This document shows positions 1,401 to 54,754 of a stretch of DNA of 64,000 nt, one piece after another. The notes under the pieces are model-generated. The model was given only the letters and a program-made list of their open reading frames with translations. It searched no databases and was not told the origin of the DNA. Within the stretch, counting starts at the first letter, position 1. Each line of letters opens with the position of its first letter. Origin of the DNA: Azolla caroliniana (lineage: Eukaryota; Plantae; Polypodiophyta); NCBI GenBank assembly GCA_043228905.1, contig JBHGNT010000016.1, positions 7,378,001 through 7,442,000 of the forward strand, in the 5' to 3' direction. The translations under genes were made by a program, and so were the position numbers.

Positions 1401-2045
1401 TGGTAGCTAATTAGCTACTACCATAGTTTAGTATAGTAGCTTATTAGGTAAGTAGTAGCTAATTAGCTACTATCATACTTTAGTTGAGTAGCTAATTAGC
1501 TAAGTGGTAGCTAATTAGCTACTACCATAGTTTAATACATTAGCTAAATGGTAGCTAAATAGTTTAGTACAATAGCTAATTAGGTAAGTGGTAGCTAATT
1601 AGCTAAGTGGTAGCTAATTAGCTACTACTATAGTTTAGTGCAATAGCTAATTAGCTAAGTGGTAGCTAATTAGCTACTACCATAGTTTAGTACAGTAGCT
1701 AATTAGCTACAACTTAGCTAATTAGCTACTATCATAGTTTAATACAATAGCTAATTAGCTAAGTGGTAGCTAATTAGCTACTACCAATACTTTAGCTGAG
1801 TAGCTAATTAGCTACCACTTAGCTAATTAGCTACTACCATACTTTAGTTATAGTGGCTAATTAGCTACCAGCATACTTTAGCCAAATTTGGTAGGTAATT
1901 AGTTATTGTTATAGGCAGCTAATTAGGTATTGTGGTAGCTAAATAGCTATGAATGGTAGCTAATTAGTTATTCTGTTAGCTAAATAGCTATGTTCGATAT
2001 ACTTAGGGAGCTAATTAGCTATTTTGGTAGCTAATTAGCTATTAC
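1401..2045. repeat. TAGCTAATTAGCTA palindromic satellite
   Basis: Many degenerate copies of the 14-bp palindrome with short spacers; same motif as 38185-43334 and 52560-53400. Confidence 0.95.
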
Positions 2046-2054
2046 GGGTAGGTA

Positions 2055-2291
2055 GTTCTTTCTATGATAGTAGTCTCATTACTTCCATTCTCAGTGATAT
2101 TTAGACCTATATCCCAACCAACACTATCTTTACCTTTTGGTGAGTGTGGCTTTCGTATCCTTCAACAATTGACGATGTTTTCTTTTTCTTTTTGCCCAAT
2201 ACTTTCGTATCGCTTGTTGTGTCCTGATAGCATCATCCCTATCCTGATGATCATTGAGGGGTAATTCTAAACACCCTCCTTCCCCTTTCAT
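2055..2291 (-). pseudogene. N-terminal fragment of family A transposase
   Basis: Minus strand reads MKGEGGCLELPLNDHQDRDDAIRTQQAIRKYWAKRKRKHRQLLKD, matching 37436-37600; truncated by the satellite. Confidence 0.75.
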
Positions 2292-2439
2292 TTGGCTTGA
2301 CGGGTTTAAACCCTAATTTTCCCGAAAAAAAGATACGTATTAAAGATGGCTATGGGCAACAACTATACACAAAAATATTCCACAAGACACAAGATTATAC
2401 ACAACAATACACAAGATAATCAATAGATTGAATAGTTAT

Positions 2440-3445
2440 TAAAATCCAAGACTGAACAATGGCGGTAATCTAGGCTTGAATAGTGGCGGCAACTGAGTGT
2501 AGAATGCCGGTAGTGGAGGAGTGAACTCTGTTTGATCAAACAGTTTTAACAATCCAAGAATGAACAATGGCGGCAACTGAGTGTAGAATGATGGCAATGG
2601 AGGAGTGAATTCCGTCGGATCGAACAGTGGCAGATGGTGCTTGGAACGCATAGTGACGACAACTAAGAGTAGAATGGCAGGAGTGGAGAAGGAGTGAACT
2701 CCTTTGGATTGAAAAGTGGCAGCAATACACCACAGAACAGTAGCGGCAACTAAGCGTAGAATGATGGCAATGGATGAGTGAACTTTGTCAAATCGAAAAG
2801 TGGCAGCAATCCAAGACCGAACAATAGCGACAACAAGTGTAGAATGATGGCAATGGAGGAGTGAACTCCGTCAGATCGAACAGTGGCAGATGATGCTTGG
2901 AACGCATAGTGACGACAATTGAGAGTACAATGGCGGCAGTGGAGAAGGAGTGAACTCCCGCAGATCGACAAGTGGCAACAATACATGACCAAACAGTAGC
3001 GGCAACTAAGTGTAGAATGATGGCAATGGATGAGTGAACTCCGTCAAATCGAAAAGTGGCAGCAATCCATGACCGATCACCAAATAGTAGCAGCAATTGA
3101 GTGTAGAATGATGGCAATGGAGGAGTGAACTCCATTAGATCGAATAGTGGTAGATGATGCTTGGAATGCACAGTGATGGCAACTGAGAGTAGAATGGTGG
3201 CAATGGAGAAGGAGTTAACTCCGTCGGATCGAAAAGTGGTAGCAATATACGACCTTCACAATAGTGGCAACTGAGTGTATAGTGGCGGCAATGGAGGAGT
3301 GAACTTGGCAGATGATGCTTGGACTAAACAGTGGCGACAATGGCGGCAATGGAGGAGTGAACTCCGTCAGATCGAACAGTGGCAAATGATACTTGGACCA
3401 CACAGTGCCGGTAACTGAGTGTAGAATGGCGGCAATGGAGGAGTG
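2440..3445. repeat. Subterminal tandem repeat (about 60-bp monomers, about 260-bp higher-order unit)
   Basis: Recurrent GTGTAGAATGATGGCAATGGAGGAGTGAACTCCGTC motif; homologous to 36100-37325 in inverted orientation. Confidence 0.9.
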
Positions 3446-3959
3446 GACTCAATAGGGTTTAGCAACAGTGGTAGTAATCTAAGCCAGAATACTCAACCAA
3501 AGATGGTCCACGTGATGTGGCAAACGATCATGCATAATGGACCTAGGAATTCGGTATATAATTTATGGTGCACATTTATGTTGCACATATCAATTTATGT
3601 TGCACATTTATGGTGCTCATTTATATAATTAAAACTCTCTACTATCTTCAATGGTAGTTTTTTGCATAACTAATATATCAATGGTAGCTTTTTGCAAAAA
3701 TGACTATTTATCAATGGTAGCTTTTTGCATAGCTAATTAGCTATGTCAAGGACATAGCTAATTGTTTCCACTCGCATGCTTTCACCCATCCATTATCATT
3801 TAACACATTCATTCTTCTCTTATCATTTCATTCCTCTCTTCTTGTGATCTCTTTATATCTTTCTTCTGTCACTCTATCTTCTGTCTTGGTTTTGACATTC
3901 ACACTTGTTCATGGAAAATTATTTTTATTTTGGATCGATATCACATCAAGAATAATGGA

Positions 3960-8949: not shown

Positions 8950-11900
8950 AAGTTGAAATAATAACACTCTGTACATAAAATGTGCTCAGTGAGCACTTTT
9001 ATACAAGTCCATGAAAGGACTAACATAAGTACTAAGAAGTACTTCAATGCTCATACAAGTAGCTGACACTGACTCCCAAAGATACACCTACGTACTAGGC
9101 TAGATTCGTCGGCCTCTAATGGCCTACCGGTTACAATCCGATCCGGCTTCTGGTTTTGGATACCATCTAGACACCAATCCGGCTCTGGCTTATTCAGCCG
9201 ATCCGGATCCGGTTGAGGTTGTCCACTCAACACTACCCCTCAAGCTCAACTTGAGCTCGGATCATGGTGTTAGTGTTAGTGTTAGTTGGTCTTCTCCTCC
9301 GGCTCCCCCTACTGTCCTCCCGCTTGCCTCACGCTCCTTGACTCATCCATTTCTGCACCCCTGTATTCGGTCTCCGTGCTCGAAAGTGCGATGGTAGGCT
9401 GCTTCTTACTACTCCAACATATTGCTCTGCCTCCGAGCAAGAAGACAAATCCAGAGGTCGATCATCTATCGGCTCTGTAGCCGGACAAGTCAGCATCTTT
9501 GTACCCTTTGAGTCGAATTGGTGTGGACGATTCGTAGAGAATACCACAATCCATCGTTCCACTCATGTATCATAACACTCTCTTAGCACAATCGAAATGA
9601 ATATTTTGCGAAGTTTGCATGAATTGGCTAAGGAGGCCGACCGGATAGCTCAGGTCGGGTTGAGTGATTGTGAGGTAGATGAGACTCCCGATTAGTTGTC
9701 GATACAGAGTCGGCTCGCACTCGTCTAGCCAGAGCAACATCCAGTTTGAGGCTTCGATCAAGAGAGGTTGCCACAGATTTGCACTCAGTCATCCCGAACT
9801 TGTATAACAAGTTGAGGATGTAGTGTCATTGAGAGATCATAATACCGGCCGGAGTCCAAATTACCTCGATGCCAAGGAAGTAATGGAGCTCCTTCATGTC
9901 CATCATCTCGAATTTGTTGGAGAGCAGGGACTTCACCTTCTTGATGTGACTAAATGCTCCCCTCCAATAACCAGATCATCCACGTATAGGATGATGACAA
10001 TCAAGCTTCTAGAGTCGTTTCATATGTAGAGCGAGTTTTCGGATTTCAACATTCGAAAGCTGATTCGATGAAGAAATTGTGTTATCTTCGAGTGCCAAGC
10101 ACGCGGTGCTTGTTTGAGGCCGTAGAGAGGCTTCTTGAGTTGGCAGACAACTTTCGAATGGATGGTTGATTTGAAGCCGGGTGGTTGTACCATGTACACC
10201 TAATCTTCTAATTCGCATTGAAGAAAGGCGTTTTTGACGTCCATCTGGTGGAGATGCCACCCTTTTGCTATTGCGAGTGTGATCACAGTCCACACATTTG
10301 TCATCTTTGCCACCGGGGCAAATGTCTCTTCGTAGTCGACTCAATGTGTCTCTACGTATCCTTTCGCAACAAGTCAAGCTTTGTTGCGGTTTACGGAGTT
10401 GTCGACATTATACTTTACCTTATAAATCTATATGTAGCCGATTACCTTCTTCTGCGGTGAGTGGGGAACAAGATCCCATGTCTCGTTCTTGCATAGTGCT
10501 TGCATCTCCTCGTTCACTACTTCGACCGATCATGGACCCTTTCCTGCATCCAAAAAACTTTCCGGTTCTCGAACTGTCGCCACCTTCATCATAAAGGGAT
10601 AGTGGTATGCCATATAATCATTGTAGCCAAATCGGCTAATAGGATTTTTCTCATGGGTGGAGGGACGAAGTTTTTTGTTTGCCATGGCAATGGCTTTCTT
10701 TACGCTAGATGTCCTCATGATAGGTACATCGAAGCCACCGAACTCAGTGTCAAGGGAGTGAGTCGATTCATTGCCGTTGAATTGACCGTCTTCATATTCC
10801 GACATTTTCGCCTTGCCTTTGTCAATCTTCGGACTAGGACGAGATGTGCTTTGGTCGCTCGAGGCCTCTTGTGGCCCACTAAGTCTTGTCGTAATTGGAC
10901 TTTCTTCGAACATGTGTTCGAGTCGATGTCCATTTTCTATCTCTTGTTCGGTGCATTCCGGGTCGACTGGAAATGGTTCGGGAGGATTCGGCTTGGGTTC
11001 GTACCATGATGTCGATTCGTAAAGACTACATCTCGGCTTACACGAACCTTCCGCGAATCAGATGAGTAGTGTCGTCTCCGGTTTCGACATAGATTTTTCT
11101 CTATGTCTCATCACGAACATTCTGTCATGATCGTCATAGTCGGAGTTGGTGACATAATTGGTGAGTTGTTAGCTAGTGGAAGCCAACCTGCACATCTTCT
11201 TCTGGCACTCTTCTTCATGGTGGCCGATTTTGCCGCAATATCTGCATTTGATCGAGTTTTGATGGCTTGGGCCGGAATGGAAGCCCCCCCTTCTTCTGAA
11301 GATTCCTCGACATGGATTCCATCTTGTTGCCGGAATTGGGAGTTGTTTGTGTGAGTTGGACCTCGTCTGCCTCATCCTTGGCCAAATCGCCCTCTTGCTC
11401 GTGCACGTCCTCTTCCTCCATTCGAATGCCGGTAGAGCATGTGGCCTTTCGAGGCGTTGCTCCTTGTTCGAACATGGTTTTCTTCAACCTACAACATGGA
11501 TTAAAGATTGAAGAAGGAGGGAGGATTCTCCCATGCTAGTACGACGGTCCTGATCACGCCAAACTGTGGGGCAAGGCCATCGAGGCATATTTGCACCAGC
11601 GCTAGTCACCAAGTTCCTTGATCTTCAAGGTATAGCTTGTGATGGACATATTCCTTTCTTGGATGTTGTTCAGCTCTTGGCGGAGTTGAAGCTTTCTTGC
11701 GGTTGTGTTGGCGGCGAAAATCTTTCGTAAATTCTCCCACGCTTCCTTCAACGTCACAGCTTCTCGAATGTAGTCGAGTATGTGGTCATGAACACATGTC
11801 GCCAAGCAATACATCACTCGGCTTGCTGCTTGCTCCGATGTTGAGTAGTCGGCATCTTTTGGGTTGGGTCGATTTTCTTGTGCTCCTTTGATGTAGCTCC

Positions 11901-12161: not shown

Positions 12162-12165
12162 TGTA

Positions 12166-12192
12166 GGGTCGAAGCATGCTACGGTGTACCAA
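12166..12192 (+). repeat. Left TIR of element B
   Basis: GGGTCGAAGCATGCTACGGTGTACCAA. Confidence 0.88.
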
Positions 12193-12594
12193 AAAAGTAT
12201 TGTTTTTGGCCAAGAAAAACACGAGTACTTTTAGTACTAAGTAATTATAAAAAATTTTTTTAAAAAAAAAAAAAAAATTATAATCTTTTTAGGGAGTGGG
12301 GTGGGGGTAGTACACGTTGCATTTAATGGGGGGAGACAGTTGTTGCGTATTCAGGACTGGTTTGGGGGCTATTTCCCCCTCACTTTCAATTTAGCACACC
12401 ACATTAATTGAATTTGGCGCTTCTCACCATTTTGGCGCATCCCCTTCCTCCTTCCAACTGAGCCCATCTTAGATTCACTATTTGTCGTTGTCTGCATCTC
12501 AGGTATTCACAACACGCGAATGTCCCCAAGATTTGGGATCTTGTCATTCCTTATCTACAAATCAAACCTACGTGAAAATGATCAAACCTACGTA

Positions 12595-13479: not shown

Positions 13480-14480
13480 GATTCACTAGTACTGATTATG
13501 GTCATAACCATGTTAAGTAAACTTAATTTACAGGTTAGTACTATCATCCTACGTGTACAAGTACTAATTAAGGTTGAGGCCTTGTAATGTATCCGTAATT
13601 TACAACATAGTATTGTCCCCAAAGGTGCACATGCACAAGTATTGACAATGTTTTACAACTAAGTACTCAGATCCCACATGCGCAAGTACTAATTTATAAC
13701 TTAGGATTGTATTACTTCATTGGCACGAGTACTAATTTATATCTCAGCACTGCCCTCTCTTGTGCATTAGTGCTAATGAATAACTTAGTACTATCCTCTT
13801 TCGTTCATTAGTACTAATTTATAACTTTTGGACTGTCATCCGGCAAGCACGAGCACTAATTAATACTTACATTGCCCCGTCTCAGTAATGTTTGTACTAA
13901 TTCATAACTTAGTTATATTCAACTTTGTTTCGTTAGTACTAATTTATAACTTAGGATTGTTCTCTCTCATTAATACTAATTATTAACTTAGTACTATCCA
14001 ACCATGTTCATTAGTACTAATTATTAACTTAGTACTATCCAACTTTGTTCATTAAGACCAACTTATAACTTAGGATTGTCCTCTATCACGCATTAGTACT
14101 AATTAATAACATAGTACTATCCAACTTTGTTCATTAAGACCAACTTATAACTTAGGACTATCCTCTGTCATGCATTAGTACTAATTAATAACTTAGTACT
14201 CTCCAACTTTGTTCATTACGACCAACTTATAACTTATGGTTGTTCTCTCTCATGCATTAGTATTGATTAGTAACTTACCACTCCCCTCTCTCGTTTGTTA
14301 GTACTAATTTCCAACTTAGTACTATCTTTTCTCGTGCATTAGTACTAATTAATAACTTACCACTTCCCTCTCTCATCTATTACTACTAATCTCCAACTTC
14401 GTACTATCCTCTCTCATGCATTAGTACTGATCAATAACTTAGTACTATCCTCTCTTGTTCATTTGTATTGATTCAAATAT
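13480..14480. repeat. Intronic TTAGTACTAA-based tandem repeat (about 40-42-bp units)
   Basis: Repeated TTAGTACTAATTAATAACTTAGTACTATCC units inside the transposase intron. Confidence 0.9.
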
Positions 14481-14997
14481 TAGTTTAAGTAATAATTATG
14501 GTTTAAGTCATGCAATTAATTATGTTTGTTGGCTAATTGTCATGCAAAACACCCAGATACTTCTCATTGACAAACATTAGGATGCAATGGAACTACTTCG
14601 GGTTTGGACATGGAAAGGGAGAGCATGATGGCGCGGGGGCTATGATCAAGCGTGCTCTTACATCGGGGCAGTTGGATAATAAAGGTGCTAAGCTAAAAAA
14701 TGCACATGATGTTGTGGAGTGGCTCACATGGAAGATGTCAAATGATGGTAAGAATAGATTGTTTATTGAGGTTCATGCTAATGAGGTGGATAGGAGTAAA
14801 TCATACGGTTGTAAAACCGTGAAAGGGACGTGCAAGACCCATTGTGTTTTAGGGTTTAGTCACAAGGACACAACACAATTGTTATTCCGTAGTTTATCAT
14901 CCTTTTCTTCCATGTGTTTAGATGAAGCTTGGGATGAACGCACCAATCTATCAATTGTGGGGCCATGGAAGCTACAAAAGCTAGAGAGAGAACACAG

Positions 14998-15600
14998 TGT
15001 GAATATCCAAGAAAAACGAACATTCAAACAATATTGCATACTACAACCTGATGAGAAATCGGTGCGGAAATTTAATTCACAATGAACAGATAATGCTGAA
15101 ATATGAATTACAGAAATGCCAGAAAAATAAGATAAACAAGAGTGCACAGAGATTTACGTGGAAACCCTAAAACGGGAGAAAACCACGGGAACAAAATCTT
15201 CACTATGGATAGTGGATATACAATATAGCGATGATTACAACACTCTGTCGAGTGTATCAGCCACACAGGGCTCTTCGCGTCTGTTGCTACTCACACAGCT
15301 ATGGCGCGGCTCACACACACACTCTCTATCTCTCTTTTTCGCTATACCCTGTTCGTCTCTCTAACACACTAACTAAAAGTTTGCCCTAGTTGCACATGTA
15401 CTTACGCAACTTCCTAGTTATTTACATGCGTAGCCCTCGTGGAGCGCACACTTAGACTATTTACAAGTATAGTCTCCTGAGTTGGCTATTTACACGATTC
15501 CGGTTTCGGCCTCAGCCAAGTTGCTTATCAACTCGGCTCCTCGACTGTCAGCTTTCCGGATGGTCAGATCTTCCTCCCATTGGAGGGACATATCCCAACA
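14998..15600. mobile_element. Probable solo LTR interrupting transposase B
   Basis: 603 bp bounded by TG...CA (TGTGAATATCC...TATCCCAACA); transposase homology stops and resumes at its edges; no clean TSD. Confidence 0.65.
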
Positions 15601-16287
15601 CATCTAGTGTGAGGACTTAGCAATATTATTGGAAGTTGGAGATCATTTTGCAGTGCTCAAATCTCCTCAGAATGAAGATTTTGAAGACTACTACATTGTG
15701 GTGTACAAGCAAGGAAATACAATATTGGAAGAAGTCGTGAGGGATTGCTGGGGCAACATGTTCAATGTTGGTGGGTCTGTTGTGTATGGCAACTACTATG
15801 CAAAGTTGCCACAATGCAAGAACACATATGCATTGTTTAAAGATGCACCCACCGCAATTATCTATGTTGATGCCATTATCGCAAAGCACAAGGTTAAGGG
15901 ATACAACACTATCTACAAAGTCCCCAAAGGGGTACACGAACACATATTGGGGGAGGTCTCCCTCTTTAATGCTTAGAATGGCAAGTGTTGCGTCTAATGT
16001 AATTTTTGCATGTGTTCAAACTCTGACTTACAAGTAAAAGGAAATATATCATCTTGGGTTTTCATATTTATCTTGGGTTTTCTAACAGTATCCCTCTTTG
16101 GTTTAGATATGTATGTTTCTTTTATATGAAGTGTCTAGTGCTTGGTAAAATATCTCATTGGCTAGTATTTGAGCCTACGTTAGTATCAAAGTTAGGAGTT
16201 CATATGTGTGTCTATATCTCTTTAGTAGTTCATATGTATCATATGTATGCCTATAACTCTTTAGGAGTTCATATGTACCAAAGTTAG

Positions 16288-16870: not shown

Positions 16871-18399
16871 GTTTAGTTTTTTTTGGATCTTGTAATGCAC
16901 CTATTTTTTGTTTCATTCTTCTCAAATTTCACACCCTTGTTCATCTTAAAACCATGAGGTAGTAAACTACACACTTCCAAGAAGATGTGGTCGATAATCT
17001 TACTAGAAATCTCCTGGGGGTCATTGGACGTGTCATTCTTCAATTTTCCCGGCTCCAATACCACATTATTAGGAGTACAAACATGTTCCTCATCTTGGGT
17101 GCTTGTCTTCATTGCAAACTCCCCTCCCTGTTGATCAAGTTAGACACTTGCTCCAAGTGCAAGCTACTTGCAGTATTTTGGACAGACACCTCATTCGTAG
17201 TACCACACTCTCCTTCTTCTTGGGTAGTTGCGGGGGTCTCCTTAATGATACAACCTTGGCCTAGGTTAAGGCTGCTTGTGTTGTTTTGGACACACACCTC
17301 ATTCTTTGTACAACCATGATCCTCTCCTTGGGTCAATTTCACATTCTCTTCAAACTCCATTGCAAAGTTGATTGTCACCTCATGCTTTGTCCACTCCAGT
17401 TCCTTGTTTTGGGTGATCTCACATTCCTCATGTGTGGTAGCATTTGAGCCTGAATAATCAAGATTGCTCCATAAACTACCTGAATCATCTGATGGTATTT
17501 GTGAATCTACATGCTCTTCTACTCCTAAATAACAGTAAAGTGATGCAAGAACAATATCAATTCACATTCTGAAAAAGTGAAGGCACCTAGCCAAATGTTT
17601 AAGGTTAAGGGACAAATGTTTACCTACTGTTACATCGTCATTGTTGTTTGGGATGGTCCCAATTTCAAGTTGGGGCTCTTCATCATGCCAATATTTCCCA
17701 ACACTCTCTATGTATTAATACACTTGTACATTATTGTCACGTGAAGTAATATGGTCAAAATAACAATTATATGAGACGGCTCCCAACATGTACTTGGAAG
17801 TGAGATAAATTCTTCTTCATATTGTGGCTCTGAATTTGTATCTCCATTTTCATTACTCTTTTCTTCCTTGTCTAAAAACAAAAGTATGTAGTATTAGTCT
17901 AACTCATCAAGATGACACCAACCACAAGTTTGCAAGAATTTGTATTACCCACCACAACAATCAACTTTGCATTTCTTCCCCTTTCCGTACAATTTCCTTG
18001 CAGCATTACACTTCTTTGTAGGCTCTTTGATAGAAACATAATAAATTAGTAGTATACCAACATTTTAGAAATTAGACAGGCAAACACAATTAGCATTACC
18101 ATTCACACAGTCAGGGCGTGCTAAGCTAGGAGATTTTGTTTCAAGCATCACATCTTCAACTATTCCAATGGCCTTTCTCATACATTCATTTTCATCATAA
18201 ACTTCATCAGGTACCACTAAGGAACGACCGTGAACTTTGGAATTTGCAGCACACTCTGTACATAGTATCACGGGGCCTGGTTTGTCAATTACCTTCCCTG
18301 GTGTGGTGTTGCTAGAAACTACAACATTCATATTATAAGCATACATATTATAAGGGTACATATTATAACATGAGTCCAAAATTACAAATACAGTACTGA

Positions 18400-19745
18400 T
18401 CCACTTGGACATGCATATTTCATCTGGTAACGAACAATGTTAGTACTAAAAAGCCGATACATTCACGTCTATTTGTTCGGTCATGCAAAGCCTAATTCAA
18501 GTGGACACAAAAAGTACAATGCAATAAGCAATGTTAGTACTAATACAAGTTATACAAGTAAACATTTAGGACCCTCCGTACCAAATAATCAATATTGAAT
18601 TAATTGATCATGAAGGAATACAATGTATTAAGTAATGTTAGTACTTAATCAACATCTTAAGAACTTAAACGATTAGTACTAAGCCACATGGACATGCATA
18701 TTTCATCTGGTAACGAACAATGTTAGTACTAAAAAGCCAACACATTCATGTCTATTTGTTTGGTCATGCAAAGCCTAATTCAAGTGAACACAAAAAGTAC
18801 AATGCAATAAGCAATGTTAGTACTAATACAAGTTATACAACTAAACATTTAGCACCGTCCGTACCAAATAATCAATACTGAATCAATTGATCATGAAGGA
18901 ATACAATGTATTAAGTAATGTGAGTACTTAATCAACATCTTAGGAACTTAAACGATTAGTACTAAGCCACATGGACATGCATATTTCATCTGCTAACGAA
19001 CAATGTTAGTACTAAAAAGCCAACACATTCATGTCTATTTGTTCAGTCATGCAAAGCCTAATTCAAGTGGACACAAAAAGTACAATGCAATAAGCAATGT
19101 TAGTACTAATACAAGTTATACAAGTAAACATTTAGCACCCTCCGTACCAAATAATCAATACTGAATCAATTGATCATGAAGGAATACAATGTATTAAGTA
19201 ATGTGAGTACTCAATCAACATCTTAGGAGCTTAAAGGATTAGTACTAAGCCACATGGACATGCATATTTTATTTGGTAATGAACAATGTTAGTACTAAAC
19301 AGCCAAGACCGACATGCCTATTTGTTCGGTTATGCAAAGGCTAAGTCAACTGGACTCAAAAAGTACAATGCAATTAACCAATGTTAATACTAATACGAGT
19401 TATACAACTAAACATTTAAGACCCACCGTACTAAATAATCAATACTGAATCAATTCATCACAAAGGAATACAATGGAATAAGTATTGTTAGTACTTAATC
19501 AACATCTTAGGATCTTAAAGGAATAGTATTGAACCACCTGGACATGCATATTTCTGATGGTAATGAACAATGTTAGTACTAAACAGCCAAGACCGACATG
19601 CCTATTTGTTCGATCATGCAAAGCCTAAGTCAAGTGGACAAAAAAAGTACAATGCAATTAACAATGTTAGTACTAATACAAGTTATACAACTAAACATTT
19701 AAGACTTTTAGTACTAAATAATTTGCACTAAATCGATTGATCATC
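18400..19745. repeat. 283-bp tandem repeat (about 4.7 copies) rich in TTAGTACTAA, downstream of the RING exon donor
   Basis: GGACATGCATATTT at 18407, 18690, 18973, 19256 and 19540. Confidence 0.95.
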
Positions 19746-19800
19746 CTGGATCCAACTGTAAGAACATAGTATAAAAATTGCATAATGCTTCATCACATAC

Positions 19801-19985
19801 CATAGGAGTGTACTTTCAAACCCCAAGCTAGGTACCATTCGGCTCCAACTGTACTTTTACAGTCCAAACATATATTTTCTTTCTCGAAATGGTACTTAGC
19901 ACATAACAAATGATATGTGTGCAAGCATGGTGTAATGATAGCATCCATAGACTCAAGCTTGAATCCAAGGCCATAGAATAAACAC
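19801..19985 (-). CDS. RING-H2 zinc finger exon (absent from the ORF track)
   Basis: After an 89-bp intron (20074-19986) it reads RCLFYGLGFKLESMDAIITPCLHTYHLLCAKYHFEKENICLDCKSTVGAEWYLAWG, then a GTATGT donor. The second Cys is Tyr. Confidence 0.82.
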
Positions 19986-22454
19986 CTTCAGTAACGAGAC
20001 ACAACATACATTATATTAGCACCAATGATATTTTATACCATAGAAGGTTAAAAAGGAGAAATATAAACCATTACCGTGATATAGTAATGTTTCTAATTGA
20101 ACTTGCCATGCAAGCGGGGTGCTCACCTACATTCGGACATAGAGTATCTAAACCTTTTTCTTTTAGACCCTTCATCAAACATGTTAGATTCTCTGAATGC
20201 AGCTTTAAGGTTGATAATTGCTCATCAATTTCATTACAAGAAGACCGCCATGTCTCTAGATCTTTCTTGTGTGCTTCTAGATGAGTACCCATAGTTTTGA
20301 GCTCCTTCTTCAACTCCTCTTTTAACACATCACTTTCTGAATTTTGGATTGTTGATGCAATCCATTCGTATGTATTCAACATAGATGTGAATTGTTTCTC
20401 TATTGCCCTCTCACCAGATGAAACTTCTTCCAAATCGGCCAGCAGTGCTTGCATTTCTATTTGCATGGAAGCTATATAGCGCAACAATCGTTGTTCATGT
20501 TTTTCCGTCCGTGTGGCTTTTTGTTTTGCAATTTGTTGAGTCAACATAGATGTCCGAGTTGGGATTTCAATATGAGAGATACCCTCAGACTTCATGGTAG
20601 TGTTGGTACTTGAGGATGTTATGTACACATAACGTTGGTGAGGGTAGGTCACTAATATTTACATTAGTGAAGGGTATGTTCACTATTATTAAAAAGGGGA
20701 CTAATGATTGGATAGAATGAATGATATGTGCATGCACTATCATGATTTAGACAACCAATGAATAGAGAGCCTTTTAGAAAGGCACATCTATTCAAGGGGC
20801 CTAGGAAAAGGTATAAATATGAGGCTTAGCTACCCTCATAGGGATCATCACGTCGGAAGGCTGCTGTCGTAGACACCGGTGGTGCGGGCTAGGCTTTCGT
20901 CTCGACGATCGTGTTTATCTCTTCCAAGGTATTAGTCATCCTAATATCCGGCGGTATGGGACGTCGGTGGTAGGTTGGCTATGTCTAGATCATAGCTCGG
21001 GGGTGGTCGGGTGGAACGGGTTCTTCTATCCAATCAATTTTCTTCCTTTTTACTTGATTTGGTCTATTGATTAGTAATAGACTCTTAACAGAGGACCCTC
21101 TATAATGTGATGATCGATGATGAGCAAAATCTTCCCAATCAACTTCAATGCCACCATGGAGTTCACATGCAAATGCACATGCAAAGACAAATCCTACCTC
21201 ATTGTTTAGGATATGTTTCGTGTCATAAACTTGTTCATATCGTGACTTTAGTTCAATGCTATAATCCTTCTTCAATTGAGTGAGGTGGAAACCTCTCCGT
21301 GTCTCGGGTTGTGATGAGCCCCAAGTTTTCATCATCCACATGTCTAGGTCTTCATAACTGTCAAGTCGTGCACAAAGGAAATAACCCCATCCCAATTTTG
21401 TACCTCGAAGGATGTTTGTGTGAACCTTTTTGCCTTGAGTTGTTGAAAACTTCAACCTCCCTCTGGTGGGGGTCATCTTACTTTCTTTGATGGGGGTCCT
21501 TTTTCTTTCCTTGCATGGTGTGATGACATTTTTGGTGACCATTTTCTTCTTTTTGGGTGTCTTCCTTATCATGTGAATCCTGTCTCTCTTCTTCGCCTCA
21601 CATGCACAACAATAGTAAATAACAATAAATCATGCACAACAATAGTAAACAATATTAAATAATATACAATTCAAGGAGATGTTGGATATGAAACATAATG
21701 TTAACTCCCGATACTTAACATATACACATGTTGACTGACTCTCAAATTCAAGCATATGCATGTACAAAGCTCTCAAATGATCAAGAGAGAACAACAACAA
21801 CAAAACCCTAAACGATAATAATAGATAAAAAAAAACACATACAGATAAACATGTCCCAAACATCGTTATGGTTGCAGATGTAAAAAAACAGATAGAAAAT
21901 AAGAAAAACAGATAGAATCAAACATACAAACATATAGAAAACAAGTACCAAATGTCATTGTTGAAGTCTTTGAAGAGGGGACGCGTTTGAAACACACTAG
22001 GTAGAGGGAACCAGGTAGAGGGAACACTTGGAGGTAGCGGGAACACGACCAACAGAACAGAGACCGAGGCAAAGAGGACACGGTGTGTAGACCACACTTT
22101 AGAGAACGCGGCCAGTAGAGGAAAGCTCGATGTAACGAGGACACATTACAACGGTTGAGAGAGAGAATACCTGAGAGAAAGGGCACGACAAGGACATAGT
22201 TGAAGACCTGATGTCGATGTAGCGAGGACACAGTACAACACCTGAGCATACTGTTGTTGCAAAGAGGACATGACAAGCAGGGAATGGGTTTAGGGTTTGC
22301 AGGGTGAGCAGAGAACGTGGAGAAACCGGTGCCGAAGTTGGAAGAGAGAGAGAGGGAGGGAGGGAGGGGGGTACGAACGTAGTGAATAAATGAGTAGAAG
22401 GGGGAAGGAAAGAGTGCGAGAGAGACGAGGTACAAACCTAGGGAATTACCAAGT

Positions 22455-22593: not shown

Positions 22594-22788
22594 GTTAAGA
22601 CCGCCTTACAACAGTACATGGGATTTTAACACAAGTGATGTTTATTCATATTTGAAATCTATTTTCATTGAATGTGACTTTTAATTTTAAGACAAGTGAT
22701 CAATTTTTTAAACCCAAATATTGGATTTATTTTTACATTTTTAAGTTTTTCCTCCACATGGAATTAGTACTAAAGTTTTGGCCAAAAG

Positions 22789-22815
22789 TTGGTACATCGG
22801 AGTGTGCTTTCACCC
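22789..22815 (-). repeat. Right TIR of element B
   Basis: Reverse complement reads GGGTGAAAGCACACTCCGATGTACCAA. Confidence 0.88.
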
Positions 22816-23200
22816 TGTAAAGAATCATATCTGATTCTTGTGCAGCGGAAGAGATGTGTGTTGTGTGTATGGGTGAGAGGAAAGATAGAACAGAAGAGAA
22901 AACACAAGATAGATTAGATAGAATGGAAAATAGAATACTCAAGAAGAAAGTGTATATTCACAAGGAGAATTTGAGATACAAAATGTAGCATTACAAGGAG
23001 TCACAACCGACACTCTATGAAGTAGGAGGAGCGTGGTTTATGTAAGGCCACCCTCTCTCTTCATTAACTCACTACAAGAACTACTCCCTCTTGGGGAATG
23101 TGAAGAATCATAGTCATGGGGAATATGGAATTCATTAATTATGTGTCATAGAATATGATTCTATGACACATAGTTAATGTGTAGAGAGTAGTGATGTGAC
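22816..23200 (-). mobile_element. Remainder of the copia 5' LTR, separated from its PBS by element B
   Basis: Removing B restores ...CTTTACA|TGGTATCAGAGC; pyrimidine-rich U5-like sequence. The outer boundary is uncertain. Confidence 0.6.
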
Positions 23201-35689: not shown

Positions 35690-36099
35690 ATTAACTATGT
35701 CCTTGACATAGCTAATTAGCTATGCAAAAAGCTACCATTGATAACTAGTCATTTTAGCAAAAAGCCATCATTAATAAATTAACTATGCAAAAAACTACCA
35801 TTGAAAATACTAGAGTGTTTTAATTACATATGTAAATGAGCACCATAAATGTGCAACATAAACATGCAACATAAATTGATATGTGCACCATAAATGTGTA
35901 CCATAAATTATATATCGAATTCCTAGGTCCATTATGCATGATCCTTTGCCACATCACGTAGGCCATCTCTAGTTGAGTATTGTGGGTTAGTTGCTACCAC
36001 TGTTGCTAAACCCTATCGAGTCCACCTGCCGCCACTCTACACTCAGGGGCCGCTACTGTGAAGGTCGTGTATTGCTGCCACTTTTCGACCCGACGGCAT

Positions 36100-46961: not shown

Positions 46962-46993
46962 GTCCAGCCAAAATAGGAGCCGTTTGGTTGGAC
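46949..46993 (+). promoter_or_regulatory. -1 programmed ribosomal frameshift signal (G_UUA_AAC plus stem-loop)
   Basis: Slippery heptamer 46949-55, 6-nt spacer, 11-bp stem GTCCAGCCAAA/TTTGGTTGGAC (one G-U). The -1 frame is open and is the pol frame. Confidence 0.78.
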
Positions 46994-49900
46994 AGCCCTA
47001 GATCTGTGCAGCCCATTAGTGGTTCCATTCCCTCTAAGCAAGTTAGTGATGTGTTCGTAGCCCAAGTAATAGTTAGTACTAAAAGTACCCCTCCAGTACA
47101 TGTCCTAGCACTCCTAGATTCCGGAGCTAACTCTTGCTTTATGGATAAGAAATTTGCTCAAGCTCATAAGATATCCCTAAGAAAACTCCAGTGTCCAGCC
47201 TCTGTAGTAGTCATTGATGGACGTCCCATTGCTTCCGGAAATATCCTAGAAGAGTCAGAGCCCATTAATATTGTCCTAGATAACTTAGTATGTGTAGTAT
47301 CATTTAATATTATTAGTATCCCAGAACATCCTATAGTTTTAGGACTACCGTGGTTCGAGTTACATAACCCTGACATAGATTGGAGAACAAGAGAAATCCG
47401 GTGTCGACAAACCCAAGGGTCAACTCAGAAGATGGCAACCATTTCGCTACGTCAGTTGCGTAAAGAAGGGCACAAGGAGGAAATGTTCCTCTTTGCAATA
47501 TCAGTAAACCCCTCCAACACCACTAAAGAAGAATCCACCGTTCAACTTCCCGAGAAGTATCGCCATTACACCGATGTGTTCGATAAAGTACAAGCCAACA
47601 CACTTCCTCATCATCGACCGTACGATTGCCCCATCGATTTACAACCGGGAAAAGAGCCGCCATGGGGACCGATCTATAATTTGTCACCAACCGAGCTGGA
47701 AGTCCTTCGGGCCTATATAGAGAAGAATTTGGAAAATGGTTTCATTCGGCATTCGAAATCTCCAGCCGGTGCGCCCATTTTCTTCGTCAAGAAAAAAGAT
47801 GGATCGCTTCGTCTCGTTGTAGATTACCGTGGCTTGAATAAGGTTACAATTAGGAATAGGTATGCTCTTCCCCTTATCTCAAGTCTTTTAGAACGGATCA
47901 ATGGTGCCAGGTTCTTCACGAAGATCGACTTACGGGGAGCATATAACCTCGTACGGATCCGACCAGGAGACGAATGGAAGACCGCGTTTCGCACCAGATA
48001 TGGGCACTTCGAGTATACTGTCATGCCGTTCGGCCTCACTAATGCGCCGGCAGTCTTCCAGCACATGGCTAATGATATATTCCGAGATCTATTGGATGAT
48101 TGTTTGATCATCTATTTGGATCATCTACTGGTTTATTCAAAGACCCAAGAAGAACATGATTCTCATGTACTATTAGTACTAAAACGACTTCGAGAACATG
48201 GTCTGTATGCAAAGCTAGAAAAATGTAGTTTCGGGTGCAACCAAGTGGAATTTCTCGGCTACATCATTTCGTCAGAAGGCATCTCCATGGACCCAGCTAA
48301 GGTCAGAACGGTGGTAGAATGGCAGACTCCGCGTTCGGTACGGGATGTGCAATGCTTCTTAGGCTTTGCCAATTTTTACCGGAAGTTCATACAGGATTAC
48401 TCAAAGATCGTTCTACCTCTCACACAACTTACCAGGAAGGGACAACCGTTCACCTGGTCTGAAGAAACGGACATGGCTTTCGAGAGTCTTAAAAAAGCAT
48501 TTACATCGGCTCCAATTCTAGCTCATGTCGATCCGGAGAAACCATTCATTATCGAAGCTGACGCATCGGATTTTGCATTGGGGAGCATTCTGTCACAACA
48601 GGGGAATGATGAAAAGCTACATCCTATGGCTTTTCACTCACGCAAGTTTGATGCTACCGAAATCAACTACGAAATCCATGATAAGGAGCTATTGGCAATA
48701 GTGGATTCTTTTATGCAATGGAGGCATTTTCTGGAGGGATCCTCTCATCCAGTCACCGTATTTAGTGACCACAAGAATCTTGCCTACTTTCAGGATGCTC
48801 GTGTGTTGAATCGACGTCAAGCTCGGTGGGCCCACTTCCTCACGCGTTTCGACTTCAAAATTACATATCGTCCGGGGAGGCACCAAGGGAAGGCAGATGC
48901 ATTATCACGGCGTTCATATCTAGCACCCCGTCCCGGCGAGCCAGCTTTCGATAACCAAAAACAAGTCATCTTGGGACCGGCACGATTACAAGCAACACAA
49001 ATCTTTGACATGCCTATGGATTCCCGCGTTATCGATACCATACGTGAAGACTTGAAGACAGATGCGTTCGCCCAAGCTATACTAGCACAAATTGATCCCT
49101 CTCGAGCGTCGTGTTCACAGTCGCAACCACCAGGTACGGACTATCGGCAATTCAAATACCATGATGGATTACTCTTCTTTAAAGAACTTTTGTATGTTCC
49201 TAATGGTTCTTGCCGCCTTCGAGTAGTACAAAACTGTCATGACACATATACAGCTGGGCATTTTGGTAGTACTAAAACATTACATTTAGTACAACGATCA
49301 TTCTGGTGGCCCTGTATGCGACAATTTGTCGAGGATTTTGTTCGGACTTGTGATACATGTTGCAGAGCGAAAATGCCAAGGCATCATCCATATGGTTTAT
49401 TAGAACCATTATCAATTCCAAGCAAGCCGTGGCAATCCATTGCTCTAGACTTCATCACAGATCTTCCAGTCTCTAAGGGGTTCAATGCGATTCTAACGGT
49501 GGTCGATCGATATACGAAGATGGCTCATTTCTTGCCATGTACTAAGGAGATCTCCAGTGAAGACACTGCCGAAATTGTCATGCGTGAAGTATGTGGGCAT
49601 CATGGACTCCCCGATAGTATCATCAGCGACCGTGGACCCCAGTTCGTGTCAAAATTCTGGAAGCACCTTTTTAACATGCTCAAGGTCACTTGTAACCTCT
49701 CTTCCGGCTACCACCCACAAACTGACGGCCAAGCTGAACGAACAAATCAAACGTTGGAGCAGTATCTGCGGTGCTTTCTCAGCTATCATCAGGACGACTG
49801 GGCAGATATTCTCCACTTCGCCGAATTTGCCTATAACAACTCTATCCACGCATCCACTAAAGTTACGCCATTTTATGCTTATACGGGATGTCACCCCCGG

Positions 49901-50545
49901 TGGAGTGTACTTGAAACCCCAGAGGTGTCCACAAATCCGTGCGCGGAGGATCGTTTGGAGCGGTTACGCAAGATACAAGCGGATTTATCTACTCATCTCC
50001 AGCAAGCTCAACAAACACACAAGGTCTACGCGGATCGTCATCGACTTCCATCTAGTTTTAATATTGGAGATCGGGTGTGGTTGCTACGACGACACATCAA
50101 GACTACTCGCCCATGTGAGAAGTTGGATTATCGGCGATTAGGTCCTTTCCGTATTATTGGAAAGATTAATGATGTTGCTTTTCGTCTCGACCTACCTCCT
50201 CAACTTCGGATACATCCGGTGTTTCATAGTTCTCTCTTCGAACCCTACCACGAGAGCACCATCCCAGAACGTCTTATCCAACCTCCACCCCCGATCGAGC
50301 TTGAAGATGGGCCAGAGTACGAGGTTGCCGCCATTCTTGATTCCAAGATTGTTCGCAACAAGCTCTATTATCTAGTCGATTGGCTAGGCTATAGTCCCAG
50401 CGAACGTACTTGGGAACCGATCGAGAATGTAACCAATGCTCGTGCTCTTCTTGAAGACTTCCATCGTCAATATCCACACAAACCGGGTCCTCAATCCAAG
50501 ACGACTCGTGACACTCGTCGTTTTAAAGGGGGGATAGTGTCATGA
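46988..50545 (+). CDS. Pol polyprotein: protease, RT, RNase H, integrase, chromodomain
   Basis: 1185-aa ORF with LLDSGA, YLDH (normally YLDD), DASD..ELLAI..DH..ADALSR, HHCC plus DDE integrase, GPF motif and the chromodomain EYEVAAILD..YLVDWLGY..TWEP. Confidence 0.95.
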   Translation: MDSPRSVQPISGSIPSKQVSDVFVAQVIVSTKSTPPVHVLALLDSGANSCFMDKKFAQAHKISLRKLQCPASVVVIDGRPIASGNILEESEPINIVLDNLVCVVSFNIISIPEHPIVLGLPWFELHNPDIDWRTREIRCRQTQGSTQKMATISLRQLRKEGHKEEMFLFAISVNPSNTTKEESTVQLPEKYRHYTDVFDKVQANTLPHHRPYDCPIDLQPGKEPPWGPIYNLSPTELEVLRAYIEKNLENGFIRHSKSPAGAPIFFVKKKDGSLRLVVDYRGLNKVTIRNRYALPLISSLLERINGARFFTKIDLRGAYNLVRIRPGDEWKTAFRTRYGHFEYTVMPFGLTNAPAVFQHMANDIFRDLLDDCLIIYLDHLLVYSKTQEEHDSHVLLVLKRLREHGLYAKLEKCSFGCNQVEFLGYIISSEGISMDPAKVRTVVEWQTPRSVRDVQCFLGFANFYRKFIQDYSKIVLPLTQLTRKGQPFTWSEETDMAFESLKKAFTSAPILAHVDPEKPFIIEADASDFALGSILSQQGNDEKLHPMAFHSRKFDATEINYEIHDKELLAIVDSFMQWRHFLEGSSHPVTVFSDHKNLAYFQDARVLNRRQARWAHFLTRFDFKITYRPGRHQGKADALSRRSYLAPRPGEPAFDNQKQVILGPARLQATQIFDMPMDSRVIDTIREDLKTDAFAQAILAQIDPSRASCSQSQPPGTDYRQFKYHDGLLFFKELLYVPNGSCRLRVVQNCHDTYTAGHFGSTKTLHLVQRSFWWPCMRQFVEDFVRTCDTCCRAKMPRHHPYGLLEPLSIPSKPWQSIALDFITDLPVSKGFNAILTVVDRYTKMAHFLPCTKEISSEDTAEIVMREVCGHHGLPDSIISDRGPQFVSKFWKHLFNMLKVTCNLSSGYHPQTDGQAERTNQTLEQYLRCFLSYHQDDWADILHFAEFAYNNSIHASTKVTPFYAYTGCHPRWSVLETPEVSTNPCAEDRLERLRKIQADLSTHLQQAQQTHKVYADRHRLPSSFNIGDRVWLLRRHIKTTRPCEKLDYRRLGPFRIIGKINDVAFRLDLPPQLRIHPVFHSSLFEPYHESTIPERLIQPPPPIELEDGPEYEVAAILDSKIVRNKLYYLVDWLGYSPSERTWEPIENVTNARALLEDFHRQYPHKPGPQSKTTRDTRRFKGGIVS

Positions 50546-50869: not shown

Positions 50870-50973
50870 GTCTCGCTCACTTCTTCCTTCTCTCGAAGAA
50901 GTTCCACACCTCTCATAGTACTAATCCTTCGTTTAGTACTAATTCCTTCTCTGTCTCAGTACTGTTCATGACA
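50538..50973 (+). repeat. 3' LTR of the chromovirus
   Basis: Direct repeat of the 5' LTR. Confidence 0.97.
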
Positions 50974-52559
50974 GCATCTCTGAATATCGAAGTAGTGCCG
51001 GAAATGTTCTGTATCCAAAATCAATGTGTTGTCAACATTATATTCAGGCCAAGTAGCCCAAAAATCAAAAAATCTCTTGAATCGTGCAGCTTCCATTTGC
51101 TCACAATTTTCTCGTGCCCATTGACCTTTAAAATGACTTCGCCATTTTGGGAAGAACCTCGCTAAACACTCCCACACATCTGATTTTGGTTTTTCACTCC
51201 AAATAAACAAATCAAAGTATTGCACAGCCCACTCTAGAAACTGATTCGCGTCCCTCCTTGGCTGCATATATCTCACACTCATCAAGAATTTATCAAGCTC
51301 CAAGATCAAGGCTCTTCTTTCGACTTCTAGTGGTTTAGGTTTCCATTCCTGAAACTGAGCCGTTGTTACACCATTTTCTGGTAGGACACGATCAATCTCA
51401 ATCAGCTCAGGTTCTGCTGACACAATTGGCGTCCTTTTCCTCTTCAAACCCCTAGTCGACTATGTTGGGCCTCGCTTCACATTCTAGTGCTCTTGTTTTG
51501 TCGACTTAGTTATCAATCCTTGGATTACCTCGGTGCATGTAGCTACTGATCTGCTCAATATAAGTCCACTGGTATCACATGTTGCATCTACCTACAACAT
51601 CAAGTCATCCATGCAACATGCTTGATCAACTTGTGTGACCAGATCACTTGTGTTAGTTGCTACATCTACTTTCAAGATGGGGCCCTTTAAACACGCCGCA
51701 AGATCAACGGTATCCACACTGCCATCGGCCTTACGAGCAATACAATCAAACCCTTTAGACTCTACAACATCAGAAAACACCAACATATTCTCACTCACAA
51801 AGTAACTAACAATCTCACAAAACAACATAATGAACTTTAAAGAGTTTCAGTCATAGAACAACACTCTTCAAATTATCTTGGAAAAACATCATAGAGTTCC
51901 ATTACATAATGTGGATCAAGCAACAACCAATCGGAGGTTTTACTTCTCCAACAGGATAGCAAAACTTCATAAAACCCTAGCAAAATCCCTAAGCTAACAA
52001 TCATATCCAACTAAACAGTATTTCGTTCCACTACGTCTGGGCCCCTTGACCGAGTAACTGGTCTTGTTCCCGATCGTGGCCCCTTCTTCAACCTTTTTCT
52101 GGTCGGTTGCCCATTTAGCCTTGCTTCTTTCACCCAATGCGCAAGTGTGTCCTCCTCCGACAACCTGCCCATCGGCTCAGCAGCTAATTGCACATCAGTC
52201 GTTTCTTGTACTAGCTTTTCAAGTACAGAAGGATCTGTTTGGACATTTTCAGTAGTTGGGCTCGGTGGGGTGGAATCAAGGTCTTGAGATTCGAAGAAAT
52301 GTTGCATCAAGTGTTCAAAAACACTGTTGTTGTGAACGTCAGTTTTACATGTTGTTTCCACTATTTCATGGCATTTCACATCGTTGCCTAATTCAGTACA
52401 CTGTTCCAAAAGAATAGGGTGGAGCTTATCTGAAGGAGATGTGATAGCAGGACTCTTTACTTTCAGCCACGTTGGCAGCTATCTCCTCATCTGTTGCAGC
52501 GTCATCAGCACCACACACATCATGTGCTGTCCTTAATCCACAAGATTCTACAATAACAT

Positions 52560-53400
52560 GGCAGCTATTTAGGATAGCTAATTAGCTACTTTACTAAACT
52601 ATGGTAGTAGCTAGGATAGCTAATTAGCTACTTTACTCAACTATGGTAGTAGCTAGGATAGCTAATTAGCTACTTTACTCAACTACGGTAGTAGCTAGGA
52701 TAGCTAATTAGCTACTTTACTCAACTATGGTAGTAGCTAGGATAGCTAATTAGCTACTTTACTCAACTATGGTAGTAGCTAGGATAGCTAATTAGCTACT
52801 TTACTTAGTTATGGTAGTAGCTAGGATAGCTAATTAACTACTTTTCTCAACTATGGTAATAGCTAGGATAGCTAATTAGCTACTAGGATAGCTAATTAAC
52901 TACAATGATAGCTAATTAGCTACTTTCTCAACTATGGCAATTGCTAATTAGCTAGTAGGATAGCTAATTAGCTAGTAGCTCATTAGTTGCTAGTAGCTAA
53001 TTAGCTTTTTTACACAACTATGGTACTAGCTAATTAGCTATCATTGTAGCTAATTAGCTATCCTAGTAGCTAATTAGCTATCCTAGTAGCTAATTAGCTA
53101 CTAGGATAGCTAATTAGATAGTAGCTCATTAGCTGCCAGTAGCTAATTAGCTAGTAGGATAGCTAATTAGCTACTTTACACAACTATGATACTAGCTAAT
53201 TAGCTAGTAGCTAAGTAGCTGCCAGTAGCTAATTAGCTGCCAGTAGGATAGCTAATTAGCTAGTAGCTAACTAGCTGCCACTTATCTAATTAACTACTGT
53301 AGTAAACTATGGAAGTAGCTAATTAGCTACTAGGATAGCTATTAGCTGCTTTAATCAACTATGGTAGTAGCTAATTAGCTACAACGATAGCAGCAAAATA
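52560..53400. repeat. TAGCTAATTAGCTA satellite (39-bp units) in the intron after the RING exon of A
   Basis: GGATAGCTAATTAGCTACTTTACTCAACTATGGTAGTAGCTA tandem units. Confidence 0.95.
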
Positions 53401-53467
53401 GTTTCCATATTTTTTACGGCTTAACTAATTAGAAAAGACTAAGCTTATTAGCTACAGTATGGTATAC

Positions 53468-53807
53468 CTGTTAGTTTTCTCCACTCATTTGGCAGAGTTG
53501 TACTGCAATCTCCCAAACAGAATGCAGCAATTCGACAGGCATATTGAAAACAAAGCAGATGGTATGTGTGGTTGCATGGTTGTAGGTGAACCAACAAAGA
53601 CGCAGTTTTCTCCTCCACACCTAACCCGCAAGCGATGCAACGTGCTTGAATTGTCAATAAATCATTTTCTGGTTCTCCTTCATTTGGTAAGGGAGCAAGA
53701 ATGTTCAGGTCCAAATCCTGTCTGCTCCTTACCATTCCCTCCACAAAATGTAGCTGCTTCTTAAGACAGCTAACTACCTGTTCTTGATGAATGTATTGCT
53801 CCTTCAA
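53468..53807 (-). CDS. RING-H2 zinc finger exon
   Basis: CIAC..PCNHTYHLLC..CLGDC gives a C3H2C3 pattern; ends at a CAG|GTATAC donor. Confidence 0.85.
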
Positions 53808-54754
53808 CGCAACAGAGAAATTTACCGATTAATTATTCTTGTCTGAGAAAGATACACCAACTTTGCTCAGGAATCGTTAACTTACTTGAAGCTTTTCCAA
53901 ATTGTAATCTGCAACAGTATTTACACCTAGAAGGTCCAGGTTCATTGAAAGAACCTGGATCTCTATTTGCAGTTGTATTTTACGTTGGGGATCCAGTGGC
54001 CCCTCTAATTCAAGCTCCTGTTGCGCAACCTATTCCAGATAAGGCTTGATTAGCACATTTTACCCTTAAAGTTATTTATAACACAATCACATACCAACAA
54101 AACAATAGTTACCTGAATCTTATTTCTAATCATTGTAACAACGGAAGTAACTTTGCTCTCCATTGCAGAAGCCATTGTGGCTTTCTCTAAATCAGTCTTA
54201 AAAAAGGCCAATGCCTCACAGGCTTTATGGACATTTTTTAGCATATAGCGAACCAATGTCTCACCTGTATCATCGACATTGGCTTTCCTTGGGTGTCGGT
54301 GTGGTGTATGCCCCAGGTTTTGCTGGGAGTCGGCAATTGCATCAACAGCTGCCATGCTCCAAAATTTGTCTATTTTTTGTGCCAAGGTCCCCATCTTTCG
54401 GCATCTTTCTACCGATGCCTCACCATTGACTGCCCAAGCTACCCTCTACATTTCAGGGTCTCTGGATTCCTTCGTTGTTTTGCAGTACTCATATGCAAAT
54501 GCTCTAGCAAATGAAACTGACAACTCATTGTTGACTAGGATCTCCTGATAAACTTTTTGGTGCAGCCTCATGCAATCATCGTACAAGTCGGCTCATACAT
54601 GCTTCAGCTTGACCTTGCCTTTGACTCTAGGCACTGCATATACTATCATCCACCCTCAACTAACAAACCATAGGTGTTGTGGAAGTCCTCCTTTGTCTCA
54701 CAAAATTTTGCGAAGTTTAGCACTCTCGGATAAGGAGGAACGAGCCATCTGAAA

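Follow-up and report, generated by a model that had tools for sequence, protein, structure and literature searches.

Within a 64-kb window of the Azolla caroliniana genome (the whole stretch analysed here, 64,000 nucleotides of contig JBHGNT010000016.1 in assembly GCA_043228905.1, positions 7,378,001 to 7,442,000; all coordinates below are those of the window), the segment from 19801 to 21572 holds the 5' half of an accessory gene, in a decayed copy, from a two-gene fern DNA transposon family bounded by terminal inverted repeats (TIRs). This copy lies in an element that we call B, and the accessory gene of a further element, A (54.8-50.9 kb), is a copy of the same gene from a second lineage, which has diverged. 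The ancestral protein consisted of a basic tail, an N-terminal block (N-block), a coiled-coil-like stretch, a RING-H2-type finger, a linker, and a degenerate NIF/FCP1-like domain, and the gene has a real exon/intron anatomy that is read directly from the sequence. Both copies in the window are pseudogenes, unable to make protein, and any function therefore belongs to the intact members of the family. As an explanation of the whole we lean, with modest confidence, toward decayed copies of an accessory gene whose product would act as a RING-type E3 ubiquitin ligase or adaptor on its own element. What is new here is the N-block with its shared core, its union with the helical region in a single exon, the lineage-specific ligand spacing of the finger, the intron differences between lineages, and the lesions of both copies.

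The element that carries the accessory gene

The window is a nested-transposon landscape in which copia and gypsy polyproteins accompany two large TIR-type elements. The features that delimit element B and its transposase are the following.

12165-12192, plus strand: left TIR of element B, a 28-nt arm, 21 of whose 28 positions agree with the reverse complement of 22789-22816
22789-22816, minus strand: right TIR of element B, the partner arm of 12165-12192
14564-15883, plus strand: a stretch of the transposase of element B, convergent with the minus-strand accessory gene

The accessory gene is located inside the TIR-bounded element and points toward the transposase, and the same order recurs in another fern genus, at locus L001 of Adiantum nelumboides (GCA_022343405.2), where the N-block (10061-10486), the helical region, the RING exon (11110-11286), and a NIF-like domain (13994-14874) are followed by a convergent transposase that is 67% identical to that of element B. 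The proposal of an earlier note on this DNA, which had been made from the sequence letters, that the gene is encoded by a transposon is upheld by this arrangement. The transposase pieces of elements A and B are 35% identical in protein sequence over 157 amino acids (E 6e-26). The transposase open reading frames (ORFs) gave no match in Pfam, a literature search for Sola2 DNA transposons with a RING or in ferns found nothing relevant, and no clear target-site duplication was found at the ends of element B, which is a decayed copy.

Exon structure of the two copies

The exons and introns around the finger can be assigned in both copies as follows, with the two halves of exon 1 of B given separately.

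21411-21572, minus strand: basic N-terminal tail of the B protein, 18 of 54 residues K or R and 2 D or E; start codon uncertain
21093-21410, minus strand: B-lineage N-block, about 105 amino acids, of no named family; relatives 33-92% identical
20612-21090: solo-LTR-like (long terminal repeat) insertion of 474 bp plus one GAGGA copy, which breaks exon 1 of B
20075-20611, minus strand: second half of exon 1 of B, a helical, coiled-coil-like region in frame with 21572-21091; junction codon TC+A
19986-20074, minus strand: intron before the RING exon of B, 89 nt, phase 2, GT..AG
19801-19985, minus strand: RING-H2-type exon of B, 185 nt, with ligand C2 replaced by Y, followed by the donor G/GTATGT
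53468-53642, minus strand: RING-H2-type finger of A, continuous with the preceding helical exon; last ligand pair C-x3-C
52548-53467, minus strand: intron after the RING exon of A, 920 nt, phase 1, filled with AGCTAATTAGCT arrays

On the minus strand, the last letters of exon 1 of B, up to 20075, are ..ATA TCA CG, the intron reads GTAATG…CTGAAG, and the split codon, with CG from exon 1 and G from the RING exon, encodes Arg ahead of C-L-F-Y-G-L-G … P-C-L-H-T-Y-H-L-L-C … C-L-D-C-K … E-W. The related copy L003 has an intron at the identical position with identical splice sites, and its nucleotide identity to B is 84% in the RING exon against 62% in the intron. The hidden RING exon that had been predicted for B at the junction 20074-19986 is thus borne out by the GT..AG boundaries, the Arg split codon, and the same junction in L003. 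On the far side of the finger the donors are phase 1 in both copies, as the same note had read them, being G/GTATGT in B and G/GTATAC in A (53468), and among lineage A copies the conservation ends exactly at the donor predicted after the RING exon. The two RING exons are 44% identical over 54 amino acids (tblastn E 1.7e-9), and a hidden Markov model (HMM) of the RING built without A recovers A at E 3.7e-11.

The lineages differ in their introns. In copy A the finger residues ..TIQARCIACGLG.. (T-I-Q-A-R-C-I-A-C-G-L-G) lie in one open frame with no intron before them, an arrangement shared by eight further lineage-A ORFs, so that the intron before the RING is present in B, L001, and L003 and absent in lineage A; conversely, the helical region contains two introns in A and neither of these in B. 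The reading frame is kept despite these differences, which argues that the gene was expressed and spliced over a long period. Within lineage A, the first helical-region intron (54100-54029) is missing in the 52%-diverged L011/P0043, whose ORF reads through, and comparison of L011 2030-2965 with window 54445-53880 thereby shows that this transposon gene has gained or lost an intron. Between B and L003 the ratio of nonsynonymous to synonymous substitution rates (dN/dS) is 0.41 in the RING exon, 0.48 in the helical region, and 0.15 in the tail of the N-block (19 codons), values that point to purifying selection on the accessory gene.

Lesions of the two copies

The stop that closes the ORF 21572-20985, which the earlier note had taken as the end of an ORF, is not a natural one but comes from the 474-bp insertion, which had been missed. 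Contigs from three public sequencing runs join 20611 straight to 21091, and the 479 bp that lie between these positions have TG..CA ends and a 5-bp duplication, GAGGA, at 20612-20616 and 21091-21095; read depth over the insertion is about 3000 compared with about 500 in the flanks, or about six-fold. An intron at this place was considered and is ruled out by the TG..CA ends, the 5-bp duplication, and the empty site in other copies. The ORF tail contributed by the insertion (..NRPNQVKRKKIDW..) occurs in public assemblies as a fusion with numerous unrelated ORFs (P0011-P0019, P0022).

Since the frame is continuous across the insertion, exon 1 of B was originally about 340 amino acids long, made up of the basic tail, the block of about 105 residues, and a helical region of about 180 residues, to which coiled-coil families in Pfam match weakly. 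Two relatives, P0002 and P0020, read ..H-Y-R-G-S-S-S-T-N-T.. unbroken through the insertion site, which shows directly that the N-block and the helical region, once the insertion is set aside, are parts of one exon. The searches reported here were run exon by exon on separate pieces, with the insertion in B left unbridged.

Copy A is damaged in other ways. Compared with the intact lineage-A copy L010, to which it is 93% identical in nucleotides, it has a 46-nt deletion near 54653, a TGA stop at 54595-54593 where L010 has CGA, and a TAG stop at 54448-54446 where L010 has TAT.

The N-terminal region and its shared core

The B-lineage N-block is conserved in independent contigs, and the basic tail in front of it is kept in P0001, P0003, and P0007-P0010. 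An exhaustive phmmer search of the 195-amino acid B ORF against 1.84 billion representative proteins found 24 sequences, each a short ORF from a genomic contig. Roughly half of them are related to the N-terminal region (34-86% identity); in the others, which stand in unrelated contexts, the match is confined to the final ~40 residues of the query ORF. This search of the 1.84 billion representatives returned no host-type full-length homologue of the N-block. For 10 members of the family there was no Pfam match above the trust thresholds, a sequence profile search of the PDB gave no match, and the ESM Atlas gave no usable match. Leads to SWIM/FAR1 and RteC that the ESM Atlas offered for a lineage-A ORF (score 0.91, 137 shared features) were too weak and were rejected as evidence.

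These results bear on whether the gene could be a captured host fragment, Pack-type cargo that is passive for the transposon. Plant DNA transposons frequently take up pieces of host genes, and both window copies are pseudogenes, as such cargo might be, but a multi-domain order has been kept beside the transposase at only 35-50% protein identity and in another fern genus, dN/dS is below 1, introns were gained or lost with the reading frame intact, and the phmmer search yielded no full-length N-block homologue of host type. We regard passive cargo as very improbable.

The earlier note had also claimed that the two accessory genes share an N-terminal domain. Part of that claim stands, in the form of a core of about 37 amino acids.

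54449-54592, minus strand: core N-terminal motif of copy A (..HQKVYQ..NNE..FARAFAYE..), with stops on both sides

When an HMM of the B lineage, built without A, was run against the 2393 ORF pieces of the window, 54592-54449 was its single match (E 1.9e-4), and this piece lies upstream of the helical and RING exons of A; the same profile matches the intact copy L010 at E 7e-4. For a profile-profile comparison, the N-region of lineage A was aligned from 10 database ORFs and compared with the B-lineage alignment by hhalign, which gave E 2.1e-5 and a probability of 77% over 37 columns. The aligned columns read ..Y/H-Q-K-V-Y/H-Q…N-N-E-V/L…F-A-R-A-F-A-x-E. The similarity is confined to about 37-45 residues, and the ~55 residues that precede the core are well conserved within each lineage and unalignable between lineages; the first halves of the two N-regions are not detectably alike. 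As judged by these alignments, only the core (NNE…FARAFA.E) is demonstrably common to both lineages.

An alignment limited to 37 columns at an hhalign probability of 77%, with first halves that cannot be aligned, might reflect chance or composition, in which case only the RING and NIF parts would be homologous between the lineages. Yet the motif is the sole window match of a profile that had not seen A, it occupies the equivalent gene position in both lineages, it was recovered in L010, and it spans the most conserved columns of both lineages. We consider a chance or compositional origin very unlikely.

The zinc finger

RING-H2 domains are usually E3 ubiquitin ligases, and the class was judged by the spacing C-x2-C-x(9-39)-C-x(1-3)-H-x(2-3)-H-x2-C-x(4-48)-C-x2-C in an alignment of 15 copies of the finger from at least three lineages. 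The zinc ligands are kept at 104 of the 120 positions (87%), with all eight present in 7 copies. Their order is C3H2C3, the first six have canonical RING-H2 spacing in all aligned copies, and L003, the relative in lineage B, has the full RING-H2 spacing. Between C7 and C8, lineage B has x2, lineage A x3, and the Adiantum L001/L007 lineage x4. Lineage A (the window copy, P0028-31, and L011) agrees with RING-H2 spacing apart from this x3; five close relatives, and the 52%-diverged L011 too, retain the C-x-G-D-C spacing of copy A, so that x3 can be taken as ancestral in lineage A. In the finger of the L007 copy from Adiantum nelumboides, H5 is replaced by N and C7 by Y. For the two window copies, the earlier RING-H2 assignment has the C3H2C3 pattern of both lineages in its favour and needs one correction, in copy B, where the second ligand is Y, not C, and one zinc ligand has been lost.

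Profile scores for the finger are marginal. The intact L003 finger scores 21.5 bits with PF00097, just over the cutoff of 21.0, and 24.5 bits (E 3.4e-5) with PF13639 (zf-RING_2), under the cutoff of 27.3. When the family profile was compared with PDB sequences, 35 of the 39 matches listed were RING E3 ligases or RING-finger proteins, and the best six, all RING, included PCGF5, synoviolin, BRE1A, ARK2C/Arkadia, and DTX2, at weak E-values from 0.018 (the best) to 1. We call the finger RING-H2-type because the ligand pattern is kept while the profile scores are marginal; its membership in the RING-H2 class is likely.

The NIF/FCP1-like domain

50959-51459, minus strand: NIF/FCP1-like exon of the A accessory gene, PF03031 at E 8.6e-6 and 26.0 bits against a cutoff of 21.8

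The corresponding domain in L001 matches PF03031 at E 1.5e-8 and 34.9 bits. The catalytic DxDx(T/V) motif is present in neither, A reading ..LELDKF.. and L001 ..DVNGV.., and this suggests a phosphatase-like domain that is probably non-catalytic. In copy B the domain has probably been lost or degraded. A motif ..P-x-G-F-K-M-x-K…T-R-S.. is common to window 16876-17139 (minus strand) and L001 13655-13837, just upstream of where a NIF exon would be expected, and the ~1 kb past 16876-17139 in B contains no recognisable NIF domain.

Alternative readings of the finger

A number of results weigh against the explanation that we favour. The C7-C8 spacing, in which canonical RINGs are invariant, is non-canonical in two of the three lineages. 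The finger of copy B stays below the Pfam cutoffs with both zf-RING_5 (E 4e-4) and zf-RING_2 (E 6.6e-4), and the best Pfam RING scores are 20.7 against a cutoff of 27.9 in copy B and 13.9 against 27 in copy A. An AlphaFold2 model of the RING exon, computed from a shallow 7-sequence alignment, has a predicted local distance difference test score (pLDDT) of 57 and is helical only, with no RING-like topology; an AlphaFold model of the B N-block, at pLDDT 52, is unreliable. The N-block is without a known relative, and a DNA-binding role for it is therefore a guess. Searches of copy B for NIF exons with Pfam, and with NIF pieces from A and from L001 as tblastn queries, gave nothing convincing. The database relatives are all ORF fragments from genomic contigs, and among the public sequencing runs for the locus none is recorded as RNA and no transcript or spliced read was seen; contigs of these runs over 19750-21700 have no joint across 20074-19986. 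The runs look like DNA, because intron-like sequence runs on past the exon edge.

These observations leave room for a finger that is a non-catalytic, cross-brace zinc module for protein contact or DNA binding, in a protein that would be an architectural or recruiting factor with no E3 activity. Beyond the variation in C7-C8 spacing, Pfam RING scores at or under the cutoffs, and a best PDB E-value of only 0.018, an additional Cys, five residues past C6, is conserved in lineage A, and the cysteine-rich domain of the piggyBac transposase is described as a cross-brace finger that binds DNA (PMC5861402). Set against this, the C3H2C3 order and the first six ligand spacings match RING-H2 exactly, in lineage B the last pair is the canonical C-x2-C with a basic residue after it, and most of the nearest sequences with solved structures are E3 RINGs. 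A non-catalytic finger is a possibility that we take seriously but doubt, and the preferred explanation continues to be a RING-type E3 or adaptor.

Palindrome arrays and a possible mechanism

Each lineage is associated with its own short palindrome, TTAGTACTAA occurring 23 times in element B and AGCTAATTAGCT about 100 times in element A, and these are located in introns and beside the TIRs. In element B, TTAGTACTAA is found at 12231, ~65 nt inside the left TIR, and at 22764, by the right TIR, and an 8-mer core, TAGTACTA, is common to B and its Adiantum relatives.

18437-19731: intron array after the RING exon of B, five to six units of ~283 bp, each with TTAGTACTAA

Each ~283-bp unit also contains a repeated plus-strand ORF of 53 amino acids, which is probably meaningless.

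If the accessory protein is a RING-type E3 or an E3-like adaptor, it would act on the chromatin or transcription machinery of its own element. The helical region might let it dimerise, and the basic tail with the N-block, or else the finger, may recognise the palindrome of its own family (TTAGTACTAA for B, AGCTAATTAGCT for A), in a mechanism that would as a whole resemble the binding of VANC to the tandem motifs of its own VANDAL transposons. The earlier note had put forward host silencing factors or the transposase as what such a ligase, possibly targeted by the N-domain, would act on. In its fullest form this would be a dimeric, sequence-directed ubiquitin ligase that reads the palindrome arrays of its element with either the finger or the basic tail plus N-block, with the RING and a pseudo-phosphatase that binds the phosphorylated C-terminal domain (CTD) together modifying chromatin or components of the polymerase at its own copies. 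We think that the complete scheme is unlikely to be right in all its parts; were it true, it would amount to a self-targeted enzymatic system of anti-silencing or transposition licensing that is unrelated in sequence to VANC.

Neighbouring sequences

Additional AGCTAATTAGCT clusters are present at 1405-3731 and at 35710, outside the accessory-gene intron, and point to a fragment of a third element where the window begins. An intact-looking gypsy/chromovirus polyprotein ORF of 1185 amino acids (46988-50545), with protease, reverse transcriptase, RNase H, integrase, and chromodomain, separates the transposase of element A from its accessory gene and is probably a nested insertion. In the Adiantum nelumboides locus L007 (10001-74937), the annotated gene model P0006 joins the N-block by a splice of ~65 kb to an integrase-like fragment and looks like mis-annotated transposon pieces.

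Comparison with known systems

To our knowledge, few DNA transposons carry enzymes or adaptors for host regulatory machinery, and we know of no RING or phosphatase-like domain described in VANC. The value of the present window is descriptive, in that its dead copies fix the exon structure and show ancestral features of the gene.

Among known fingers, the closest in arrangement are those of RING-H2 E3 ligases such as synoviolin/HRD1, Arkadia/RNF165, and RNF38, which have the same order C-x2-C…C-x-H-x2-H-x2-C…C-x2-C, and with which the family shares an aromatic residue between H4 and H5 and, in lineage B, a basic residue after C8. The family differs from them in its last pair, which two lineages have as x3 or x4, in PDB E-values that range only from 0.018 to 1, and in a finger that belongs to a transposon gene and shares its protein with an orphan N-block and a degenerate NIF/FCP1 domain. 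BRE1, a ligase that combines a coiled coil with a RING, offers a likeness of another kind, a long helical region that precedes the finger, although the BRE1 finger is C3HC4 and the one described here is C3H2C3. Proteins of these kinds head the PDB profile matches. An N-terminal RING is also associated with a DDE-type transposase system in RAG1 and the RAG1-like proteins derived from Transib (PMC1131882, PMC4411706). The RING of RAG1 is C3HC4 and lies within the transposase-derived protein itself, whereas here it belongs to a separate, convergent gene in an unrelated transposon group.

The nearest functional parallel is VANC of the VANDAL transposons, which binds family-specific tandem motifs and removes silencing (PMC5735166). 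As in that system, an accessory protein is encoded beside the transposase, and short family-specific motifs, amplified in non-coding parts of the element, form tandem arrays that differ between related families (PMC5735166, PMC10398659); unlike in that system, where DNA binding and loss of methylation have been shown, these activities are only conjectured here, and no sequence relationship to VANC was seen. A RING-type finger and a degenerate CTD-phosphatase fold, retained beside the transposase across fern genera together with lineage-specific palindrome arrays, and with an orphan N-block that could give specificity, would make this family a candidate for a second transposon system of counter-silencing or self-regulation after VANC.

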